From NCBI GenBank assembly GCA_000320545.1, contig ADNK01001699.1, forward strand, positions 62,001-126,000: a DNA stretch of 64,000 nucleotides, written 5' to 3'. Positions within the stretch are counted from its first letter, which is position 1. The number at the start of each line of letters is the position of its first letter. Shown here in pieces: positions 47,350-64,000 of the stretch. The notes beneath the pieces were generated by a model. The model did not search any database and was not told where the DNA came from. It saw only the letters and a program-made list of their open reading frames with translations. The stretch comes from Bigelowiella natans CCMP2755 (Eukaryota; Protista; Cercozoa). The position numbers and the translations under genes are program-made.

Positions 47350-47919
47350 CTCAGTTTCTGATACTCCAAATGCTTTAAATGTGCTACTTACTAGACTTAG
47401 TTCTTAACACAGAAACATTTATCGCAAAATAATTTCGCTTTTTCGCATAAGCTAACCCTTTAGTGCACGATTAATTAAAGAAGTATATCTATGTTGAGGC
47501 ATATAAACAATGCAGCGCGTTCGTACTTGCACCATATTGTTGCAACCGCACATGCTAGACTAAATCGACGGTGCGACGGTATCGCATGTGCTTGGATTGC
47601 ATTACGTGTAGCAGACAATGCAGGATCAATGCAATCAGGCACATCTCGCTCACAGATTTGTCGTTAGTAGCCATGCTACGCATGCACAATGGCCGCATGG
47701 TGCGTGTGCACGCGCACGTCGATCTAGACGAAAGATCACAGCATGCAAACAGGCGGGCACCGCTAGACGACGTCCGATCCTGTCCAGAGCGTACAAGCGT
47801 GCGTGTCGTGTGTGGCACACCTGCTAGCCTCTGGACAGTCGCCACATTTCTCATTTCGGCATGCCACAAATAAATATGCGAAAAGCGCAAGTGAGCTGCG
47901 CCGGCTTTGCAAATGCAAG

Positions 47920-48278
47920 CATGCACGCGTTTTTTTCGTGCGAGCGCTTGCGCAATTGTCATTGTGAACACACTGGAACGTGTTTTGACCAGCAGTTGGA
48001 AAAGTTTAGTTTTTGCTACATCGGCTGAAATGATGCCAAAATGACACCTCAGAATCCACATCACTGCATCTAGACCATTTTTTACGTTTTTGTGGTGGTC
48101 GCAGTGGTCTAGGTACATGCATCGCAGTGACATTGACAACATGTGGATTCTGAGGTGTCACTTTGGCATCATTTCAACCGATGCAGCAAAAACTGAACAC
48201 TTTCAACTGGTCAAAACACATTTCAGCGTGTTCACAATGATCGCTGCCAAGCGCTCGTGCGAAAAAAACGTGTGCATG
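47920..48278. mobile_element. Degenerate foldback/MITE-like element with ~140-bp inverted arms
   Basis: 47920-48061 is the reverse complement of 48141-48278 with scattered mismatches, mostly transitions; a shorter inverted repeat lies in the spacer. Confidence 0.7.
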
Positions 48279-48912
48279 ACTCACACTTGTGTTTTGCGAC
48301 AACGGTCCAGGCCAGCAGGCTTGTCTAGTTGTGCGCTTGTCGCCATTGAGTTCATCTTCATGCAGGTGTTGAAATTTTGGCTGTCCATCGACTAGGAGAT
48401 CATCAAACTGATGTGCGAACTGAATGGATGCAACGTGTCAATTTGTCTGACTTGTGTTGCACCGAAATTGCCAGAAAATTCTGAAAAACACCCCACTTCA
48501 AATCATCAAAAATCGCACAAGTGGTGTGGATTTTCATTGCGTGAGTTTTGGACCGTGTCATGTAATCGAACCGATTGCAATCGCGTTGCTGAGAAACTTG
48601 ATTTTTTCGAAAACATTGCTGTACTTAGACAGGTGTGACATGCCATGTTGCTATGGTGCCAGGCAGGAAGCACTCGAGCAGAGATATCTAGTTTCATTCA
48701 TTGTTATAATTGTGATGCATGAAAATAAGCAAGTGCGATGCAGTTACGGTGTGCTATTGGCGTAACAGACGTGATTTTCATGATGCGATGAGCATGGTGT
48801 ACTCTACGTTCCTTGCCGGGCCTAAACCTAGCCTGAGGAAGAGCCCAGATGGATCACACGTCTCACAAATTCTCGAATCAGCCTTCTGATCAGCCTTCTG
48901 AAAATGTATTTA

Positions 48913-53039: not shown

Positions 53040-55630
53040 GAGCTGGGCACAAACATTTTTTTTCATTTGGAAATGCTTTGCTTTGCTTCTGAACAAGTGT
53101 TTGATTTGAACAAACAATGCCCACATGTCGCGAAACTAGTGTTTGGTTTGTTCAAGTGATGTTCGAACAAGAAGCAGTGTTTGCAAATGTTTTCCTGTGG
53201 AAATCATTTGCAAACGATTTGAAAAATTTGAAATGTTCCCGCGCAGCTGCGCGCGCAAAGCACGACATGACAGACCAAATCGCAATGCATTTGAATGCGC
53301 ATTGTGCAACGTGTGACAAAGGGAACAAACAATCGCACAGGCACAACTTCACAACTCATCGCAGATGGACACAGTTGTTGCGTGGACGCCATGCGCATGC
53401 AGATGTGCAGCATCATGGCGCACACATGCTGCCATTGAAAAGATTTTGTCACTTCATTGCATCCGTCTCATTGTCGCGCCTTCGGTTTGTGCATTCATCG
53501 CTTGCGTGGGAGTTGGCATGCTGTCAATGTCCTTGTTGATTGTCTGAACTTGCTTTGCCTGCATGGCAGCAGGCGCGGTGCGATGATGCGACGCGGCATT
53601 GAAACCATTCGCATGCAGAACGGCCGCAGCCGGGCTGTTGTCCTTGAACTCTTCGTCAAGGCAAGCCACGTGCTTCGGAATGGGTGACGCTGATCGGTCA
53701 GCGTGCCGCGGTGGTGGATCTGAGGTGCTGCGCACGTGTGCAGAAGCACGCGAGTCGCAGGGTTGAAGTTGAGACGCACACGCACTGTTGCATGCAACCG
53801 ATTCGTTCTGCATCACGTGCAGCTGTCGATTGTTGCAGCAATGTGCGCCCTCGCATGCAACCGATTCGTTCTGCATCGAGTGCAGCTGTCGATTGTTGCA
53901 GCATTGGGCGTGGTGCAATGCGGTCTCGTGTTGAGAACTGAAGTCGCATGAGTCGTTGAGTTGCATTGTTGTTTGGTCCTTGAGTTGCTTTGTCACTTGA
54001 ACGTTTGAGTTCTGATGTCACTTGGTCGTTTGAGTTCTGAGTGTGCTTGGTTGCTTGCTTGTGCAGTTGAGTTCTGATCTCAATGTGTCACTTGGACTTT
54101 TGAGTTCTGACGTCACTTGGACTTTTGAGTTCTGATGAGTTGTGTCTTGATCGTTGTTGCAGGTGCGACGACGCATGGCTTTTCACTTTGCCATGTCGCG
54201 ACATGGCTTTTCACGCTGCCGTGTCGCGATGCGCGAAACTCCTGAGAGACTTCCGCAAAGTGAGTGAGCTTTTCACTTTGCCATGTCGCGACACGCTGAG
54301 CGCCACTTGGCCGTGTCCAACGTGTGCACTTTTGCACGCGGCCTTGTCGGGCCAGCACAAGCCAACAGGGGGCTCGTCGTGGTCGGGCGGCAAACTGCAT
54401 CGTGGCGCCATGATGGACATGGCAATGCACACATGCAATGCATGCATTGCATTGCGTGTCTGCAACACTTGTGACAGACATGGCAATGCACACACATGAC
54501 ATGCATGTTGCATTGCGTGTCCATGATCGCTGTGCTGGCGTGCGCCACATCATGGCCACTCAGGACTCAGGACTCAGCCCCACAGACTCAGGAACTGTTT
54601 TTCTCCACTTTGCAACCTCCAGCTGTGCCTTTCTCGTGTTTGAGAACTTTCCAAAATCTGTCCAACTTTGACAATTTGTTGAGCATCACCAATGCTTCAG
54701 CTGTGTCTGTCGACAATGCACTTCGACGCGCTGTCAGTGTCAAGCCACACAACAAGAAGATGCGTTCGGACTCGACTGACGCAGCTTCAAATCATCACTT
54801 TCCTTTTCATGCCGAGTGATGCTTCTCCAAAGTGGAGCTTCATGCACAAAGATGCATTCTGATGGAAAGTGACAAGCCCTGCGGGTGGGGTTGTCAATTG
54901 CAAATGCAATTTGAAACAGCACTGACATGGCATCTCATTGGTTGTTTCTTTGGTGAAATCAGGGAAGCAAAAGCAATGCAGCATGTTGCAGACACGTGTT
55001 TTTGATTGCTAGTTTGTTGCACCAATGAGAATGAGCTGCGCTCTCGCAAGATGTGCACGATCGCAACAGCAGCTGCTGCACGTGCTGCTGACTAGCTGGC
55101 CCCAGCCAACTGGAGCTAGCTGCAATGAAGTTTCATCAGTGCGAGATGCTGGCGAGATGGCAGCGAGACGGATGCAATGTGATCATCTGTCACTTTTTTC
55201 AATGGTCCGTCACAACCCAGCAATGCACATGCTGGCATGTGCAGTCCAACAGCACCAGAGCAGCAGTGCGCAGCACGTGTGCCAGCGCATGGCGTGGCGG
55301 CTGCGTGCGTGCATGCTGCGCATGCGCAGCACATGCGCCGGCCTAGCTAGCTGGCCTGGTCGCCGTGGCCACGTGGGTGATTTTTCTTCAGAAGTTCACC
55401 GACAACGCAAGCTCAGGCGATCTCAAGTTTGGCTAGCAATGTCGGCAACAATTGGCCACGCTGGACGCATGCAAAAGCTCAATTTTGGTGATTTTCTTGA
55501 AACGTTTCCAAAAACATTTGCAAACATGTTTGATTTGATTTGGTTTGAACAAATGCGAACACTTTGAAAAATCACTTCCAAACACCAAGTGCTTGCAAAC
55601 TTGTGTTTGGTTTGTTCAAGTGCCACTCTG
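53040..55630. mobile_element. Possible decayed DNA transposon with related subterminal motifs at both ends
   Basis: GTGTTTGGTTTGTTCAAGTG occurs at ~53139 and ~55603; (A)CATTTGCAAAC motifs cluster in both orientations at 53170-53220 and 55505-55600. Termini and target-site duplication not resolved. Confidence 0.35.
53790..54590. repeat. Cluster of short tandem and direct repeats
   Basis: 63-bp-period duplication (GCATGCAACCGATTCGTTCTGCATC...) at 53790/53853; GTCACTTG..TTTGAGTTCTGA about four times (53991-54135); GCTTTTCACTTTGCCATGTCGCGACA at ~54178/54268; GACATGGCAATGCACACA twice. Confidence 0.75.
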
Positions 55631-56929
55631 GCTCGTGCTGTGGTCAGTTTGCGACCACCAAGTGCACGCAAGCGCGCATGCACACGGACAAGTGCAAATG
55701 GCAGTGCACGTTGTGCTTTGTCATGTCCAACACTTTCACGTGAGCATGCTCATGCAGGTTCAGGCCATTGTGCCCACATCTCAGTTGGTCACATGGGGGC
55801 ATGTGACGTGAGTTGCACGCCCAGAAACACAGTTCAGGAGGGGGCACACGCAAATGGGAACATCCTTCTCGGTCACTTCCCCAACCGTGGACGTTCCTAG
55901 GAGCACCCTCGGTGTTTTGCTTGCGACAAGGAGTCGGCCTGCGTGTTGCAACGTCATGGGGGAAAATGGCCTGCACTTTCCCTGACGTTTTGGGCAACTT
56001 CAGCTGCGCAGCACGTTGCTGCTGGCTGGCTGGGGACGCTGTGTGCCCAGCACGTGACGTGCATTGGCGCGCAACGCGCTGGTTTGGCATGCTCTGAAAG
56101 ACCCGCAAGCAAGCGGCAAGCTTTGTCCTTTCACGATCTGCTCGTGCACGACCAGCTCGTGTTCCACGTTCAACAGGGTGTCAGTTTTGTGGCACGAAGC
56201 ATTGTCAAAGCATGCATTGCACAGGTTGTGTTGTCAGCGCTGCGCAATGCAACTGCACTGGTGGCGGACGAACTGCGTCAAGTGGACGATCAAGGGAACT
56301 TGATTGGGGCTCAGGGTGAGCCATGGAACCATGCAGAGGAAGCTGAGGGCAAGGAAATCAAGATTGAAAATCCGGAAGTTTCGACGGGTGGCCATGCGTC
56401 ACGGGAAGGTGTCCCAGTGGCTCAGCCCGTGGCTTCTGAACGTTCAAATCATTGAGCTTGGATCGGGCGCCCGGCATTCCCTGACGACGGATGAGGTTCT
56501 GGAGCAGTTTGGTGACCTGACTGTTTCTGCAGGCCGACGAGTTGCAAAGTGTGTTTTGCACTGCGACGGCATTGACAAAGGTGTGAATGACTCAGTCAGA
56601 GTGACAACTGCTGACTTGGAATCGCGGGAGTTCGCACTTCATCGTTGTTTGGACAAGGGAACAACTTTGCGAACTTGGGCCTGCACGATCAAGAAGTGTG
56701 GAGGCCCACATCGTGCTCCGCCAGGCATGGTGGACACGATGGAGCGGAAGGCCAAGCTGCAGCCTTCGGTCCGAGACGTTGCGGGTGCCATCGACTCGTT
56801 TCGACGGCACTGCCCTGTCAAAGGTGAGCTGTGTGTGGCCACTGTGAGCCCGGCACAGTTCCGTGGGAGTGCTCGTGGGCTTTGTGATGAAATCAAAGCA
56901 CACGCTGCTTTGGTCGGCCAAGCCGACTT

Positions 56930-57345
56930 TTTTAGCAGGCTTGCGGTAGCTGCTTAGCTTTTGTGCGCGGGACTGTGCTGATGTCACTGAGTGTCAACAC
57001 GCGGTCCTGTGTGCGTTTGAATTGTGTTGATGACTTGTGACTTGCGCTGCATGCATGTGCGCATTGGGTTCCGGCGCATTCGCGAAGATTCTCGAATCTT
57101 CCAGAATTCTCTCGAATTCTCTGGAAGATTCTCGAAGCTTCCGGAATGCTCTCGAAGATTCTGGAAGATTCTCGAATCTTCCGGAATGTTCTCGAAGCTT
57201 CTGGAAGATTCTCGAAGCTTCTCGAAGATTCCCGAAGTTCTGAGAACTTCCATGCGCATGTGCGCAGCGCAGCGTGCAGCACGAGTGGACGTGCGCATGC
57301 TGCGACAGCTCCTTGATCGTGGGTGGCGCGGCCAGACCGCTGACA
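56930..57345 (-). repeat. 3' LTR
   Basis: Direct repeat of 63042-63457; reads TGTCAGC...GCTAAAA on the minus strand. Confidence 0.97.
57079..57238. promoter_or_regulatory. Heat-shock-element array in the 3' LTR (16 TTCnnGAAnn decamers)
   Basis: Contiguous alternating nTTCn/nGAAn pentamers; 13 of 16 decamers are perfect TTCnnGAA and 3 are CTCnnGAA. Confidence 0.8.
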
Positions 57346-57354
57346 CGCCCCCAT
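57346..57354 (-). other. Polypurine tract
   Basis: ATGGGGGCG immediately precedes the TG of the 3' LTR on the minus strand. Confidence 0.75.
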
Positions 57355-57690
57355 GGACGTGGTGACCACGATCAGAGTGCTGATGTGCACGTGCCATTTC
57401 TGCCATGGTGACAGAACTTTTGCACGGTGCTGCACATGGACGCCATTCCCAAAGGTTTCGGAGTCCGAATGGTTGGCAAAATTTTGCCGACCAAACATCG
57501 CACCACCAGACGCCTGAAACTCTGTGCAGAGGCACAAAATTCCCAGGCTTGCAACTGGGCAAGGTGCCATGGGCATGGTGCACTCCGAAATCGGCAGGAA
57601 AAATTCTTGCCTGACTGGGCAAGGTGCCACCATTTCGGTACGAACTGGGACTTGTCCAAAAAATTAATTTTTTAAACGACACCAGTGTGC

Positions 57691-57772
57691 TTCCAGAAAA
57701 AATTCTGGAATCCCTCACGTGCTTCCAGAAAACATTCTGGAACATTCTGGAACATTCTGGAACATTCTGGAA
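57691..57772. promoter_or_regulatory. Second HSE-like array in the copia 3' untranslated region
   Basis: TTCCAGAA..TTCTGGAA followed by (CATTCTGGAA)x4. Confidence 0.6.
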
Positions 57773-58414
57773 CACCGATCTGGTTTCCCATAGTCAGGTC
57801 CCCAAATTTAGGAACTTCGATCGACCGTGCTTTTAACTCTTCACCTTGCCCCACCTCTTGTGATGAGGCGAGCTACGTACACGTCCACGTCCCCCAATGG
57901 AGCTCTTCCCTGAGAGACGAAATTGCGGGCTGGGCTCCAAATACTGTTGGCTGGCTGGGTTGCAGCCATGCCAGATCGAGAAGGAATGCCGAAGAGAATA
58001 CAGTCTGCCTTCGTGGGTCTGAAGGCATCATACTCTGGTCATAGCGACATTGTTCTTCCACACCTCCACACAGGGAAGGCAGTTTTTTTCTGTCTTATTT
58101 ATTTTTAATTTCGTAGGTATCTCGTAGTATATAGCCTTATATCTTGTTCTTGTTTTGTAGGTATCCTGTCTTTGTTCCACATTCGCCCCCATGATTGTGC
58201 AGTGTCTGGAAGACAGACACTGTGCAATTATATAATCCATAGCGTAATTTACATTCGCCCCCATCGGAGCTGTGCACATAGCTGTGCATATAGTCCATAG
58301 TAAGATACGCAAGGAAAGGTACACACATATAAAGATGTGTGCCATTAAAACCTTGCAGCCTATATGTTCATATGTTGTAGGTTTCTAGATGGACGTGGGG
58401 CTTTTATAGGGCGT

Positions 58415-61400
58415 CTAAGCGGACGTGGGGCCGACAAGGCGAGGGAGCTTGTAAGGTAGAGCCTTTGTTGTTATTTTTCTTTTTCTGGTGCCTTGTAGCA
58501 TGATGGTTAGTTTTTCTCTGTATGATATAGGGAACAAGAAATCACAGTGTTTCTTGTTGCTAGGTCCTGGTAGAGCCTTGGTAAGTATATCAGCGGGATT
58601 GTCCTCCCCAGGTATTTTGTTTATGCAGATCTGCTTGGTTTGATAGTTATCACGAACATTGTGATATTCTATCCTTATGTTCTTGCCTTTCTGTGTGAAT
58701 CCAGGCTTGGCTGCAATGGAGATAGCTGCTTGAGAGTCACAATACACAGGTACAGGGTTCGGTATTTTCATTTTTAACTCCTGTAGTAACTGAGTGACAT
58801 ACACTAACTCTCTGCATATATCTGATAATGCTATGTACTCAGCCTCGCCACTGGACATAGCAACGACCTTTTGCTTGTTGCTCTTCCAGACAACAGGTGC
58901 GTTGCTTAGCGATATGAAATATCCTGAATATGATTTACCCGTTTTCTTGCAGGTCTTCCAGGAAGCATCGACGTAGGCTTTAAGCTCAGGTTTGGACGCT
59001 GCTTTAAAGGTAATTCTTTTGTCCTTTGTGTTGACCAGATATTGTAGTAAGCGCACTGCAGCGATGTAGTGTATAGTTCTAGGATCTTGACTGTAGGAAG
59101 CTAGACGAGATAGAGTGTAGCAGATGTCTGGCCTAGTAGCCACCGCTGCATACATTGCTGCTCCTATGATGGATCTGTATGCCTTCTGATCTACTTTTTC
59201 ATGTTCCACGTATTCGTCTAACTTTGATCCTGTTATCATTGGTGTTTTTGCTCTTTTCGTAGGCGTGATATCATACTTCTGGGCGAGTCTGGTGAGGTAA
59301 TCTTCCTGCGATATCCAATAGTTTCCCTCATTGTCGCTACCAACTCTTATGCCCAGTGTTTTCTTTAGCTCGCCTTCATCGCGAAACTCAAACTTGTCGC
59401 CTATTCGCTTCATGACAAAGTCCAGGTCTTTCTTATCTTGATATGCTATGCATATGTCATCCACGAAACATGACAATATGATGATTCTTCCTTGTCTGTG
59501 CATTATCATTAGGCAAGGATCGGAGTAAAGCTGGACGAAGCCAATGGCGTTGAGATGCTCGAGCAAGGTAAGGCTGAATATTGCACTTGCTTGTGTCAGC
59601 CCATAAATGCTTTTATTTACCAGTAGGGCTAGTGGAAGGCCACTGTTGTATAGCCGGATTTCATCAGGTGTCTTCGGCTTCCACCCTTTAGGTATTTCCA
59701 TGTATACTTTACAGTCCATCTTTCCAGTTAGGAAAGCTGTAAGTATATCTATCCCGTGTAGTTTTAGCTTGAGGATAGATGCTATGGCTAACATTATCCG
59801 AAAACTATTTAGGGACAACGTCGGGGAATAAGAGAAGAAGGAGTCTTCTCCCGGGATCTGCGTGAACCCTCGCGCGACCAGCCTTGACTTATACCGAATG
59901 GTATAGTCTACATTTATTTTCTTCTTGAATACCCATTTAGATGTAACGAAATTTGTATCCTTAGGTCGCACTACCAGCGTAAACGTTCCAAGTTTTCGAA
60001 GCTGGTGCAGTTCCTCTTCCGTAGAAGGTATCCAATGCTTCTTATCATCTCCTGTGATTGCATCGTCATACGTCTTAGGAAGGTCCTCGATCTCATGTAC
60101 TGATGGAGCTTTTATATTCATCAGGCGGTCGTAATAGCTACCAAGTATTCCGTAACGAATACCAGGTACTCCCCTATTTTCTCTATTCGACCTTCGAGGC
60201 TTACTTTTTGCTTTTGTTTCAGGCCCACCATCCTCTGGCAACTCGTCAGTTGCACTGGATGGTTCGGGGGCGTCCGCGTCGGCAGGACCTTCTGGATAAA
60301 GGTACGCCAAAGCCGAATCACTAACTTTGTTTCTCTTCAGCGAAGGAAACTTAAACACTGTGTGGTACCATTTAGTTACACGGACTCTTTTAATTTTCAG
60401 CGTCTTCGTGGCGACGAGAAAAGTACCAAATCTATCGTCATATCCCAACATACGTACGTATTCACCTCTAGCACCCATACCACCTGCAGGTCGGAGTTCC
60501 TTGTCAATGTGGTTTACTCCGATGCATCCCCAGGTAGTTAGATTCTTTAGATTTGGTTGCTCATGGTGCAGTAGTTCTTTAGGCGTTTTTCTACCAGGTG
60601 TGCTGCGATGTGAGGTGACGTTGTGGAGATATGCTGCAGTCTGAGCTGCGTAGGACCAGTATCCGACCGGTAAGCGTGCATGTTCTAACATAGCTCTTGT
60701 TTTCGCCATGATAGTCTGTATGTGACGCTCGGACATTCCATTTTGCTCAGGTGTTCGGGCGGTGCTAGGAACCCATTTTATTCCTTCGGAGGTGAGCCAG
60801 CTATGTAGCTTTGCGCTCATATATTCACCTCCACCATCCGATCTGAATTCGTCTATGCTTCCACAACCTGGAAGCTTTCTGATGTGCTTTATGAACTGTA
60901 TGGTTTTCTGCGTAACTTCGCTTTTCTTTCTCAAGAGCTCCAAGGTAACCCACCTTGTTCCTTCATGTACGAATATTACGAAATACTTGTAACCATCCAT
61001 GCTGTTAGGCATGGTCTTTACATCAGAGTGAATTCTATTCCACATCCGGTTTTTCTTGTGGATATCAGGTACACATTTTTGCTTCTTTTTGACAGCATCG
61101 TCCTCAATCTTTGCTTTATTCCGATGCTGTTTCATCCTTTCTTGGGCGCTTGGATCAAAGATCGGAGATCTTTTTGTTTTGGCTACATCACAGGCCTTGC
61201 AAAAGATCTTCTTTGGTATTTTTATCGTCTTGGAATAAGGTAAACCTTCTGTAACTGCATAGGTGTCTCTTATCTTATCCGCTGCGATGTGCCCTAGGAT
61301 GTTATGTGCGTGCTTGATTGAAGATGGCTGTTTCATTGGGTAGGATTTAAATCTTTGTGTTTTTGTACTTTTGTTTATTTGTTTATATCTCAAATAAAAT

Positions 61401-62858
61401 AGGCCGTCGTCTTGAAAGTCCCCGAACGCGTATTCCTCTCCGTTGGCGGTAATGCTTATTCCTTGTTTTGTTCCTTTGTACTCGCTGCCACTCTTAACTA
61501 GTCTGTTTAGAGAGATCACATTGCCTGCAGCTTCTTCAGAGTACAAAGCTCCTTGTAGAACAATTTTGTGCATCTTTCCTTGCTTGTTTTTAGTAGTTAG
61601 TTTGACGTCGCCTGCATAATTCACAAAGAATCCTGTCCCATCTTTGCCAACTTCTATGTATCGTGGTTGAATAGGTTTCAACTCGTTGAAGAAGTCGCGG
61701 TCACAGAAGAAGTGGTTGTTGGCTCCGCTGTCGAGAAGGATCAAAGGCTTATGGTTGTACTTCAGCGTTTGCAGGTAAGAATTGTCGCGTGCCATCTTAT
61801 TAATGTAAGAGGGTCTTTGGGAAGGGGAGCCATGATCAATGAAGGAATAGTGTTTTCCTTTGTTCTGCTTGCCTTCATCTCTCATCTTGTTTCTGCATTC
61901 CTTTTCCCAATGTCCTTTCTTGCCACAGTAATGACATTTTGTTCTTTTCTTTAAGTTCAAGAAATAGTCTTCTCTCTTTTGCTTCTTGGAATTGTCTTGA
62001 TATGCTCCGCTGTTGTATCTGTTCTTTCCCTTTTTGAATTTTCTCTTGTAGGTATTCAGCTGACCTGTAAGTTCGTTTAGCCTTTTCTCCAAGCCATCGT
62101 ACATCTTCACGTATTTGTGTTCTGCACTGGTGTGTCCTGCATGTTTCTTTGAAGGTCTCTGCCCGTCATCTAATGATCGGGAGTTTATGTGGGAGCGGAT
62201 CATGTCCACTGCAGAGTCGAAGGTAACATCTTTCTTGTTGTTGATGACTGTAACTATAGTCTCGTATTTTTCGCTAGGTACAAGTCCTCGAAGTAGAGTG
62301 GCAAGCGCTTGGTTGTCGGAGTACCCTTCGTGCTGTGCCCGAAGTCTTCTGATCGTCGAGTCAAGGTCAGAATGATACTTTGTGAAGTCTCCATTGTACT
62401 GACCCATGTTTATATCACTTAGTTTCGAATAAAGTTTCCTGACGGCTACAGGATTGGTAGGCTCGTACTTCTCCAGCAAGGCTGCTAAGGTAACTGCTAC
62501 GTCTTTGGGTTTTCCTTCGAGTAGATCGAAGAATTTGTCAGGAAGGGTAGCAGTGAGGAAGAATCTTCCTCTCTTTCTTTTGTTTATCTTTTCTTGTGAT
62601 CCTCTTCCTTCAGGTTTGGGATTGAGGATATCGAATTGCTCCGGGGATAGCTTGAGTACTTCTCGTCGGTGAGCGGGGTCGGTGCGTACATTGACTTCTG
62701 TCACCTTTCCTTCTATTTCTATGTTGACATTGAAGCATGATTCCAAATCCGCTGCTTCAAAGGCAGACATTAGCTTGTACATGTAGGGCTTGTAGTTGCT
62801 ACCATCGTACTTGAGGGTGAAGTTTTTTTAGTAGGGAGTCTATCTGCTTTTCTGACAT
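58415..62858 (-). CDS. Copia Gag-Pol polyprotein: 1455-aa ORF from 62782; probable true start 62858 across a 1-nt frameshift
   Basis: Zinc knuckle CHYCGKKGHWEKEC; protease LLDSGANNH; integrase HNILGH..CKAC, IHSD, RSDGGGEY, QNGMSER; RT YKSRLVARGF, KSIYGLTQ, FVDD; RNase H YVDASW, SSGEAEY, NPADILTK. Confidence 0.98.
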
Positions 62859-63030
62859 GTTGTTTCGTTCCTATTTTCTTTGTTTTTCAGTGCTTTGGAG
62901 GCTTGACCGAAGATTGGCTGAGGGAATGCTGTTGTCGCTTTCAGTTCCTTCTTCTGGAAGGATGTAGCTGAAGGGGGGTGGGGGGTTGCTTGGTTCTTTT
63001 CTGAGTTGGTTCTCTAGCAAGTCCTCTTGA

Positions 63031-63041
63031 GGCTCATAACC
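63031..63041 (-). other. Primer-binding site for an initiator tRNA-Met half molecule
   Basis: GGTTATGAGCC directly abuts the 5' LTR and is complementary to the tRNA-iMet anticodon arm (GGCUCAUAACC). Confidence 0.9.
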
Positions 63042-63457
63042 TTTTAGCGGGCTTGCGGTAGCTGCTTAGCTTTTGTGCGCGGGACTGTGCTGATGTCACT
63101 GAGTGTCAACACGCGGTCCTGTGTGCGTTTGAATTGTGTTGATGACTTGTGACTTGCGCTGCATGCATGTGCGCATTGGGTTCCGGCGCATTCGCGAAGA
63201 TTCTCGAATCTTCCAGAATTCTCTCGAATTCTCTGGAAGATTCTCGAAGCTTCCGGAATGCTCTCGAAGATTCTGGAAGATTCTCGAATCTTCCGGAATG
63301 TTCTCGAAGCTTCTGGAAGATTCTCGAAGCTTCTCGAAGATTCCCGAAGTTCTGAGAACTTCCATGCGCATGTGCGCAGCGCAGCGTGCAGCACGAGTGG
63401 ACGTGCGCATGCTGCGACAGCTCCTTGATCGTGGGTGGCGCGGCCAGACCGCTGACA
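63042..63457 (-). repeat. 5' LTR
   Basis: Direct repeat of 56930-57345, followed by the PBS. Confidence 0.97.
63191..63350. promoter_or_regulatory. Heat-shock-element array in the 5' LTR U3 (16 decamers)
   Basis: Same as 57079-57238; lies upstream of gag-pol in the promoter LTR. Confidence 0.8.
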
Positions 63458-64000
63458 GACTTGGGGTTCGGTTGCAAATGTTTCCAGACGTGTCCATCCT
63501 CTCGTGCGCTTGAGAGGCTCCGTCGGGAGGCTGTGAGGAACGCGCATGCTTCTGAGAGCCCGGAGACCCAGTTTGAGATGGCTCTGCAGCATCTCTGCGA
63601 TGAGGAGGATGAAGAAAAGCTTCAGCGCGACTTCGAGGATGAGCTCGATTTTCTTCGGCGAAAGCGGCATCGATGTGTTGATGGTGTTGGTGGTTTTTGC
63701 CTTTGAACCACTCACAGTTCCAGTGCTTGGGTTGATCGACGATGGCGCTCAACCTGCTGCCACTTCGGAGGCTCCATGCCAAAAGTCAAAATCCTCTGGT
63801 GTTGGGTTTGGATGCAGGCCGATGGCAGGTGAGGTGGGTGGCTCAAGTTCATCGATTGAAAACGAAATTTTGCGAGAAGTCGATTTCACCGTCCAGATCA
63901 AAAGACACAAAAAGCATGGAGCACACGTCAAACTCCGCACTTTGTCTCTGGCATCACTTGGACCGGTCTCGCAGGACTTTGCATTGGGCACAGGTGCCCT

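Follow-up and report, generated by a model that had tools for sequence, protein, structure and literature searches.

A currently active Ty1/copia family of Bigelowiella natans with a TA-free 3' zone, probably an old hypermutation scar, and a copy inserted into DNA already purged of TA

The APOBEC3 proteins are host deaminases that leave heritable footprints in retroelements and endogenous retroviruses; their edits, C to U on the minus-strand cDNA during replication, are one-directional (G to A) and usually inactivating, and depletion of the target motif lowers the vulnerability of a sequence. RIP is a dinucleotide-specific transition hypermutation that acts on genomic transposon DNA and spills over into the flanks; it turns CpA into TpA and creates stop codons. 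Among the retrotransposons of the copia type, Ty5 and the copia element of Drosophila are primed by the anticodon stem-loop of the initiator tRNA-Met, and ONSEN is a heat-activated copia element with a few heat-shock elements (HSEs) in its U3.

In Bigelowiella natans, a hypermutation that converts TpA into TpG or CpA has already been published (Mettrop et al., bioRxiv 10.64898/2026.01.13.699255). That preprint covers an integrated giant virus, a virophage and genome-wide windows, so that the process has been shown on two viral inserts and by genome-wide statistics only, and LTR elements are never mentioned. Its footprint is defined by a TpA ratio of 0.43 or less together with a CpA+TpG ratio of 1.52 or more. 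The authors show integrated DNA as what mutates, report a hypermutable region that reaches ~21 kb past the viral insert, and offer RNA-guided targeting as one possibility.

Here we describe a complete LTR retrotransposon on the minus strand of a 64,000-nucleotide stretch (hereafter the window) of contig ADNK01001699.1 of B. natans CCMP2755 (assembly GCA_000320545.1). The features of the element and of its surroundings are given in Table 1.

Table 1. Features of the retrotransposon and of the adjoining DNA (positions in the window)
Feature	Position	Strand	Remarks
TA-purged left flank	53138..56929	.	TA ratio 0.03, CA 1.73, TG 1.55
Target-site duplication, left copy	56925..56929	.	GACTT, perfect 5 bp
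Complete Ty1/copia LTR retrotransposon, subfamily A	56930..63457	-	6528 bp; LTR pair, target-site duplication, Pfam domains
3' LTR	56930..57345	-	416 bp; TAs only at 56933, 56947, 56955
Heat-shock-element array	57069..57250	.	~35 phased GAA/TTC pentamers; U3 of 3' LTR
TA-free, conserved, strongly folding block	57346..57638	-	293 nt; end of 3' UTR
Open gag-pol polyprotein	58415..62782	-	1455 aa
Putative primer-binding site (PBS)	63031..63041	-	GGTTATGAGCC; directly after 5' LTR; contains TA
5' LTR	63042..63457	-	416 bp, 5'-TG...AA-3'; TAs only at 63045, 63059, 63067 (U5 end)
Target-site duplication, right copy	63458-63462	.	GACTT, perfect 5 bp
TA-purged right flank	63458..64000	.	0 TA in 543 bp; continues past the window

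A Pfam search of the single polyprotein identified Retrotran_gag_2 (residues 80-198), Pol_BBD (349-432), rve (583-678) and RVT_2 (933-1183, E 6e-45), that is, the order gag, protease (PR-barrel), integrase and RVT_2 that is found in Ty1/copia elements. The element shares with Ty5, copia and ONSEN this order, the 5-bp target-site duplication and HSEs in the U3. The putative PBS, GGTTATGAGCC, would be complementary to the anticodon stem-loop of the initiator tRNA-Met, in the manner of Ty5 and copia. A short polypurine run, GGGGGCG, adjoins the 3' LTR. In all copies the LTR begins with TGTCAG and finishes with GCTAAAA; it thus ends in AA and not in CA, unlike the LTRs of Ty5 and copia and the TG...CA rule for Ty1/copia. 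This terminus is atypical, but on its remaining features the element still belongs to the Ty1/copia superfamily. The LTRs are identical at 415 of 416 positions, and the sole mismatch (A at 56937, G at 63049) falls on a CpG/TpG site that is polymorphic in other copies too. An assembly collapse, which the earlier note had named as a possible source of this identity, is excluded because both LTRs lie on one contig and have different flanks.

Recomputing the TA positions reproduced exactly the distribution that the earlier note had read from the letters: a zone free of TA at 56957-57638 and in the corresponding segment of the 5' LTR, only three TAs in each LTR, confined to the last 27 bp of its PBS-proximal (U5) end, where they lie given that the element is on the minus strand, and ordinary TA content in the body (TA ratio 0.86 in the CDS, 0.73 in the 5' UTR and 0.82 in the proximal 3' UTR). 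Between 55898 and 57639 the TAs of the 3' LTR are the only ones, and none is present from 63068 to the end of the window; the TA-free runs on the left side extend from 53137 to 55010 (1873 bp), from 55898 to 56933 (1035 bp) and from 56955 to 57639 (684 bp). If a TA ratio of 0.8 and the composition of the element itself are assumed, the 682-bp zone should hold ~29 TAs (probability of finding none, ~4e-13), or ~19 if the HSE array is left out (~7e-9). The three surviving TAs of the LTR are all in the context CTA, which is somewhat resistant (~10% survival versus ~0% for ATA), a point that weighs against the account proposed below.

From ~55930 the left flank consists of a purged member of a different LTR retrotransposon family (~6.3 kb), with at least 40 paralogues at 75-89% identity and a first 328 bp that recur at a spacing of ~6.26 kb; a Pfam search of four open reading frames of the flank found no domain. 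The edges between flank and element are razor-sharp, with 0 TAs in 1035 bp and in 543 bp of flank versus 3 in each outermost 27 bp of the element. Five other full-length copies share 98.8-99.8% identity with the element, and at least 17 copies in the genome carry the full open frame, with 98-100% amino-acid identity; other insertions are likewise flanked by perfect 5-bp target-site duplications, each by one of its own. The copy studied here retains 347 intact TAs and has no private substitution relative to the five full-length ones.

Two sister copies (C873 and C485) show what the process does to this family. They keep 19 and 30 of the 347 TAs, respectively, and 323 of the 412 differences of C873 from the studied copy (78%) and 320 of the 447 of C485 (72%) are TA to TG or TA to CA. 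The surrounding DNA is purged as well, the tract of C485 taking in the element with both flanks and that of C873 coming to an end within one flank. As element and flanks were purged jointly, the process is regional, and these copies support the view that it strikes this copia family while the family is active. TG and CA outcomes are randomly interleaved in the purged copies, and CTAG and GTAGC survive; strand-coordinated editing was rejected by a runs test, which found no clustering of TG versus CA (z = 1.8 and -1.5), and the process works site by site on either strand. The LTR pairs of the purged copies differ only at the TAs of U5, plus three other sites in C485, one copy having zero non-TA differences between its LTRs. 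Since purging removes stop codons, both copies retain open frames (1542 and 1751 aa). The zone of C873 is 98.4% identical to that of the studied copy and the body only 92%, in agreement with the expectation of the earlier note that a TA-purged promoter would be immune to further attack; with no TA remaining, the zone offers the host process nothing to degrade.

The TA-free zone is not particular to the studied copy. The same CA/TG choices are present in both of its LTRs and in dozens of insertions with distinct target-site duplications, some of which sit in TA-normal DNA. In a second subfamily, B, which differs from subfamily A by 2% in the CDS and has a different 3' UTR, copies located in TA-normal DNA carry this zone as well, its 5' edge again lying at -295/-296 bp; the zone and this edge are common to both subfamilies and to solo LTRs down to 78% identity. 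As dozens of independent insertions from both subfamilies carry it in identical form, the zone spreads by retrotransposition, and being TA-free in every family copy, it is a family trait and not the mark of a recent mutated parent. The first 38 LTRs collected hold 0-4 TAs each. No U3 variant with TA was found among ~50 LTRs that were sequenced or among 71 LTRs that were checked at one CA/TG site of U3 (64 CA, 7 TG, 0 TA, 0 CG), and a second such site gave no TA variant either; the scar thus predates all extant copies. A few divergent LTRs hold TA where the others have CA or TG, as in CGTAGC versus xGCAGC in the two most divergent ones. Reciprocal CA/TG sites between LTR lineages were considered as a proof of ancestral TA and discarded as ambiguous, given that the decay of CpG could equally produce them; one multi-state site (AACGCG, AATGCG, AACGTG, AACATG) is clearly of that kind.

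The zone is composed of parts of different nature. The HSE array, which is present in identical form in the 5' LTR at ~63181-63362 (LTR positions 96-277, 5-bp phase), has a TA ratio of 0.0 and a CA+TG ratio of 0.48, outside the footprint definition given above; these ~185 bp of the LTR are free of TA by virtue of their motif and say nothing about mutation. In contrast, the zone outside the array combines a TpA ratio of 0.0 with CA+TG ratios of 1.71-2.14 and falls within that definition, as do the flanks (0.03 and 1.55-1.73). The LTR segments on either side of the array reach 2.14 and 1.98, and the 293-nt block, with 31 CA, 31 TG and 0 TA, reaches 1.71; such a rise of CA and TG alike is what purging at the DNA level produces. 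These values reach or exceed the 99th percentile of normal DNA (1.70-1.91; median 1.16) and equal those of purged DNA (median of the purged flank, 1.72). A hypermutation origin of the U3 zone is likely on this compositional evidence. The assembly holds no TA-bearing ancestor or variant of the zone, and it is from its composition that we infer the former presence of TAs in it. Between subfamilies A and B the block shows 98.6% identity, as against 50-87% for the adjoining UTR; the RNA of the block is predicted to fold with -123 kcal/mol (z = -4.3). A conservation far above that of the CDS was rejected by counts per segment (98.6% vs 98.0%), and at the sequence level the block stands out only relative to the neighbouring UTR.

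From these data we propose, with reasonable though not full confidence, an account in three steps. The host DNA, an older LTR retrotransposon copy, was first stripped of TA by the regional TpA to TpG/CpA hypermutation. A copy of the currently active Ty1/copia family integrated afterwards, generating the target-site duplication, and has remained untouched since. The TA-free 3' zone, comprising the 293 nt of distal 3' UTR, U3 and probably R, was made neither at this locus nor in the immediate parent; it is a fixed family trait, most likely an old hypermutation scar left by one or a few events that struck an ancestral master copy at its 3' end. Such a scar can survive at that end for two reasons: U3 and the 3' UTR are noncoding and are copied from the RNA into both LTRs of each daughter, and hits in U5/PBS, the 5' UTR and the coding region are either untransmitted or selected against. 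The zone has been kept since then, the block being conserved and structured and U3 carrying a giant HSE array. The data above show the order of events, the inheritance of the zone and its presence across the family, its purge-like composition and its immunity in purged copies; the former TAs, the number of events and the explanation of the TA border by U3/R are inferences.

The order of the first two steps was also that of the earlier note, and the data bear it out: with the process regional, the absence of any private change in a copy with all its TAs indicates that it arrived after the purge. At ~1.1e-5 per TpA and generation, a rate derived from the preprint (10.64898/2026.01.13.699255), the exposure allowed is less than ~800 generations of active process. 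For this timestamp only, one could argue instead for a later purge of the flanks, directed at the repeat family that surrounds the insertion and sparing the nested copia. The flank does belong to a family of at least 40 copies, RNA-guided targeting is among the possibilities of the preprint, and five unpurged copies lie in short purged tracts; however, the tracts of C873 and C485 ignore the borders of the element, the hypermutable region of the preprint extends well beyond its viral insert, and the two copies of target-site duplications that contain CA or TG are identical in all four insertions with purged flanks, which leaves a late purge improbable. Regarding the zone, the earlier note was right in that a TA-free U3 of purge-like composition is inherited through retrotransposition. 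An origin in a recent parent, still active after hypermutation of its 3' end, of which the studied copy would be the direct progeny, is not supported; the earlier note had itself named a family with no TA-containing U3 variant as a refutation, and taken literally this is what the survey found. This origin would place a purge signature exactly where U3 inheritance transmits it, in a family exposed to the process; the same CA/TG choices and 5' edge in subfamily B and in divergent solo LTRs, together with the lack of TA-bearing U3 variants in the LTRs surveyed, make it very improbable.

A composition that is intrinsic or selected, owing to a structured cis-acting element, GC-rich promoter motifs, the HSE array or selection against UA/TA, would be consistent with the lack of a TA-bearing variant and with an array that is TA-free by motif, and a block that is as conserved as the CDS and folds strongly could owe its composition to function. 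Function by itself does not predict the CA+TG excess outside the array, and a few divergent LTRs have TA at sites where all others have CA or TG; we consider this explanation unlikely. Editing coupled to retrotransposition, with a host deaminase acting at each or some replication cycles on nascent cDNA or on the RNA towards its 3' end, and with no genomic purge of a master copy needed, agrees with the 3'-terminal position of the tract. Nevertheless, the editing of a single strand is one-directional and here the excess concerns CA as well as TG, the zone begins abruptly on its 5' side and shows no gradient, the preprint finds mutation of integrated DNA, and the young copies show no ongoing loss of TA (5 private losses and 5 gains; an apparent excess of 9 vs 0 vanished with a strict definition); this mode of origin is very improbable. 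An old scar in a master copy remains our preferred reading of the zone. A further idea, that the TA-free zone evolved as an escape from a host TpA deaminase, is doubtful. If true, lineages without a target in the promoter with its HSE array, in the polypurine region and in the structured 3' element would be safe from degradation of these cis-signals. Fully purged copies would keep a working heat-inducible promoter and stay transcribable, or could be mobilised in trans or donate their 3' ends by recombination, and such a benefit would account for the loss of all TA-bearing versions in favour of the TA-free one.

The process that shaped this locus has the signature reported for B. natans (10.64898/2026.01.13.699255): TA changes to TG and CA only, TpA depletion with CpA+TpG enrichment, regional tracts and episodic activity. 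What the copia family adds is an active retrotransposon as target, an inherited TA-free U3/3' UTR, the dating of events by a nested insertion, the random interleaving of TG and CA, and the survival of CTAG and GTAGC. With APOBEC3 it shares a deaminase-type footprint in retroelement sequence and the lower vulnerability of motif-depleted sequence; in contrast, here A:T pairs become G:C at TpA, in integrated double-stranded DNA and in both directions, and the scar, limited to the promoter and 3' UTR, is carried by a lineage that is active. The resemblance to RIP lies in a dinucleotide-specific transition hypermutation of genomic transposon DNA that spreads into the flanks, whereas the chemistry is the opposite, given that TpA is destroyed and stop codons are removed; moreover, high copy number is insufficient as a trigger, at least 17 near-identical copies being untouched.

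The family represents a natural time series, in which young copies, some untouched and others fully purged, occur alongside nested insertions; it shows a process that acts regionally and in episodes and is rapid compared with background mutation. It also reveals a limit to this defence, since a retrotransposon cannot be disarmed at a transmitted regulatory end that no longer contains TA. If the TA border 27 bp from the LTR end is taken as the U3/R/U5 boundary, R plus U5 would measure only ~30-55 bp, which is unusually short; should this border prove to be that of U3 and R, the scar would offer a rare read-out of LTR replication from sequence alone. Without TA the promoter has no TATA box. The HSE array contains at least three alternating nGAAn units, as required at motif level of a heat-responsive LTR promoter, and its ~35 phased pentamers far outnumber the few of ONSEN; U3 is a candidate heat-responsive promoter. 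An Rfam search returned nothing but sub-threshold miRNA-like matches on this palindromic array. Finally, because purging removes stop codons, dead copies resemble intact genes, which introduces a bias in annotation.

The last 11 kb of the window contrast sharply in composition with the remainder; from position 53138 on, TA is nearly gone and the frequencies of CA and TG reach 1.6-1.9 times those expected. Positions 57639-63041 interrupt this TA-poor tract with ordinary composition and belong to a complete Ty1/copia element (6528 bp, minus strand) whose LTRs are flanked by GACTT on both sides. In every copy of the element the LTR terminus is AA instead of CA. The sole mismatch between the two LTRs (56937/63049, GCCCGCT versus GCCTGCT) falls on a CpG/TpG site; the family copy C460a is heteroallelic there in the opposite sense, and in the copy C2538 T is fixed. 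Such a recurrent or polymorphic site dates the insertion poorly. The PBS sequence, which we take to pair with the anticodon stem-loop of the initiator tRNA-Met, as in Ty5 and Drosophila copia, holds a TA at 63034-63035. The sequence at this place is GGTCATGAGCC in three otherwise unpurged copies (C2538, C2046 and C460:5767; loci L031, L036 and L030) and in both purged copies, and this variant would mismatch the tRNA primer.

Features of the copia element in the window
Feature	Coordinates	Strand	Description
Direct repeats (LTRs), 416 bp each	56930-57345 and 63042-63457		alignment of both borders
Open frame, 1455 aa	58415-62782	minus	gag, protease barrel, integrase and RVT_2 in copia order
PBS-position sequence GGTTATGAGCC	directly inside 5' LTR		adjoins LTR
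Heat-shock-element array	57069-57250 and 63181-63362		U3 of both LTRs
293-nt block	57346-57638	minus	3' UTR adjoining the LTR

When the TA positions were recomputed they agreed exactly with those of the earlier note: each LTR has three TAs, all confined to the terminal 27 bp on the U5/PBS-proximal side, and none occurs in 56957-57638, the zone formed by the remaining 3' LTR and the neighbouring 293 bp of 3' UTR. TA ratios (observed/expected) are 0.73-0.86 in the coding region and in the proximal parts of both UTRs. With about 29 TAs expected for the zone, and about 19 when the heat-shock-element array is left out, the observed zero excludes chance.

The family was surveyed in the 91.4-Mb assembly that holds the window, where at least 17 copies encode an uninterrupted full-length polyprotein (98-100% identity) and 71 LTR instances match one U3 18-mer. 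The comparison took in eight other full-length copies, about 20 additional 3' ends and eight solo LTRs, together with 1.5 kb of flank; each copy compared has a perfect 5-bp duplication of its own and thus represents an independent transposition, and a few contig pairs with common flanks are probably haplotigs. Two subfamilies are present: A, which includes the window copy, has LTRs of 416 bp; B has LTRs of 358-368 bp and differs from A by 2% in the CDS and also in the proximal 3' UTR. An outgroup copia on contig C1151 shows 30-45% identity. All the LTRs compared, including those of both subfamilies, solo LTRs and LTRs only 78-82% identical, carry 0-4 TAs, mostly in U5. Subfamily B copies with TA-normal bodies in TA-normal DNA share this zone and its 5' edge, the nearest TAs upstream of the LTR lying at 296 and 322 bp, versus 295, 321 and 329 bp in A, and the choice of CA or TG at each site agrees between the LTRs of a copy and from one insertion to another. 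It follows that the element brings the zone with it rather than acquiring it in place, and the event behind the zone is older than the A/B split and than every surviving solo LTR. The earlier note had proposed that a parent copy was hypermutated at its 3' end and passed the mutated U3 to its progeny; inheritance through U3 stands, as a family-wide and probably ancient hypermutation scar, whereas a recent parental event does not: with an event of that age, the window copy is no child of a mutated parent. No TA-containing U3 variant turned up in the LTRs compared, nor among the 71 instances at the one site checked, and this is, taken literally, the outcome that the note named as refuting its proposal. 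The related proposal that a TA-free promoter is immune to further attack is borne out in the purged copy C873, where the zone is 98.4% identical versus 92% for the body.

Inheritance through U3 is a sound explanation of how a scar there can spread, and it also explains why TAs were kept in U5, the PBS (one TA), the 5' UTR and the coding region. A boundary only 27 bp inside the LTR would, as the U3/R border, require a very short R plus U5. The three TAs at the U5 end may instead have been kept by selection on the integrase-binding end, or by a partial resistance of the CTA context, for which a survival of about 10% was observed.

Whether the zone is a scar or owes its composition to function was weighed by region. 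The heat-shock-element array, about 35 consecutive GAA/TTC pentamers in a 5-bp phase over about 185 bp of the LTR, varies in length among copies through 10-60-bp indels; it is TA-free by motif and has no CA/TG excess (CA+TG ratio 0.48), and is thus uninformative either way. Shorter TTCCAGAATG repeats occur in the 3' UTR at about 57700-57760. Outside the array both CA and TG are raised, as in DNA-level purging, the CA+TG ratio being 2.14 in the LTR before the array, 1.98 after it and 1.71 in the 293-nt block, against a median of 1.16 (99th percentile 1.70-1.91) in normal DNA of the window and a median of 1.72 in the purged flank. This signature makes it fairly probable that the zone outside the array is a hypermutation scar. 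Three points speak against a scar. No TA-bearing variant was found: the U3 site GATYRAGG reads CA in 64 LTRs, TG in 7, and TA or CG in none, and a second site shows no TA variant either. Reciprocal CA/TG differences between lineages and a few lineage-specific TAs are suggestive, but could come from CpG decay or ordinary transitions. Furthermore, the 293-nt block matches coding sequence in its conservation (98.6% identity between subfamilies versus 50-87% for the neighbouring UTR) and folds at -123 kcal/mol (z = -4.3), so that function may have shaped its composition; it has no match in Rfam and is a candidate cis-acting RNA or DNA element.

In mutation-accumulation lines of B. natans a regional, episodic hypermutation has been described that affects TpA only, converts it to TpG or CpA at about 1000 times the background rate in an integrated giant virus and virophage, and has been attributed tentatively to an ADAT2-like adenosine deaminase (10.64898/2026.01.13.699255). 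The process itself is thus already published; the preprint makes no mention of LTR elements, copia or retrotransposons, no literature on B. natans LTR elements was found, and the retrotransposon-specific consequences are new and of moderate reach. Two sister copies, C873 and C485, have been purged in this manner, keeping 19 and 30 of 347 TAs, and TA to TG or TA to CA changes make up 323 of 412 and 320 of 447 of their differences from the window copy. Their flanks are also purged, and the tract of C873 stops about 300 bp into one flank, so the process is regional and ignores the limits of elements, in agreement with the preprint. Along both copies TG alternates with CA at random (runs test z = 1.8 and -1.5), the hits being independent site by site, without strand coordination. 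Surviving TAs are mostly in GTAG(C) and in CTAG, where 7 and 10 of 12 sites remain, and ATA-context sites almost never survive. The LTRs of C873 differ at U5 TAs only, which indicates that it was purged while young, in keeping with the preprint counts, from which each TA has a half-life of about 6e4 generations. Because the purge destroys TAA and TAG and makes no new stop, C873 and C485 retain reading frames that stay open over 1542 and 1751 aa, with tyrosine codons lost; dead, fully purged copies would in consequence be annotated as intact genes.

The element was inserted in a purged member of another LTR-retrotransposon family (55930-56929 and beyond 63458), with at least 40 paralogues at 75-89% identity, whose first ~328 bp recurs at a ~6.26-kb spacing on other contigs; four flank ORFs had no match in Pfam. 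Up to the duplication, the flanks have no TA in 1035 bp and 543 bp, and three TAs lie in the outermost 27 bp of each element end. Compared with five siblings, the window copy has lost no TA and shows no private substitution. A regional process that erases the family when active implies that the flank was purged first and that the locus has been quiet since, which supports the claim that flank depletion predates insertion. The bounds are an exposure to active hypermutation equivalent to fewer than about 800 generations and, at the background rate, an insertion within about 1e6-1e7 generations. The rival reading, a purge guided to the flank family with the nested copia spared, is less probable and fits poorly with the regional behaviour.

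Family copies are over-represented in TA-purged DNA far beyond chance: 46% of 59 insertion ends (loci L001-L066; in the window 56630-56929 and 63458-63757) have four or fewer TAs in the adjacent 300 bp, versus about 1% of normal-DNA windows and 20% at 1.2-1.5 kb from the element, and five unpurged subfamily A copies lie within short, sharp-edged purged tracts. This excess reflects either targeting of integration to purged, possibly silent, chromatin or better survival there. Divergence from the window copy is mosaic in C394 (L034), with 55 CDS mismatches and 0-1 in the last 1.5 kb, and similar in C2046, which suggests recombination between family lineages; such exchange would also spread a 3' scar. 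A second small TA-depleted, CA/TG-enriched island (TA ratio 0.09-0.3, CA+TG 1.6-1.86) lies at 47700-48500 in normal surroundings.
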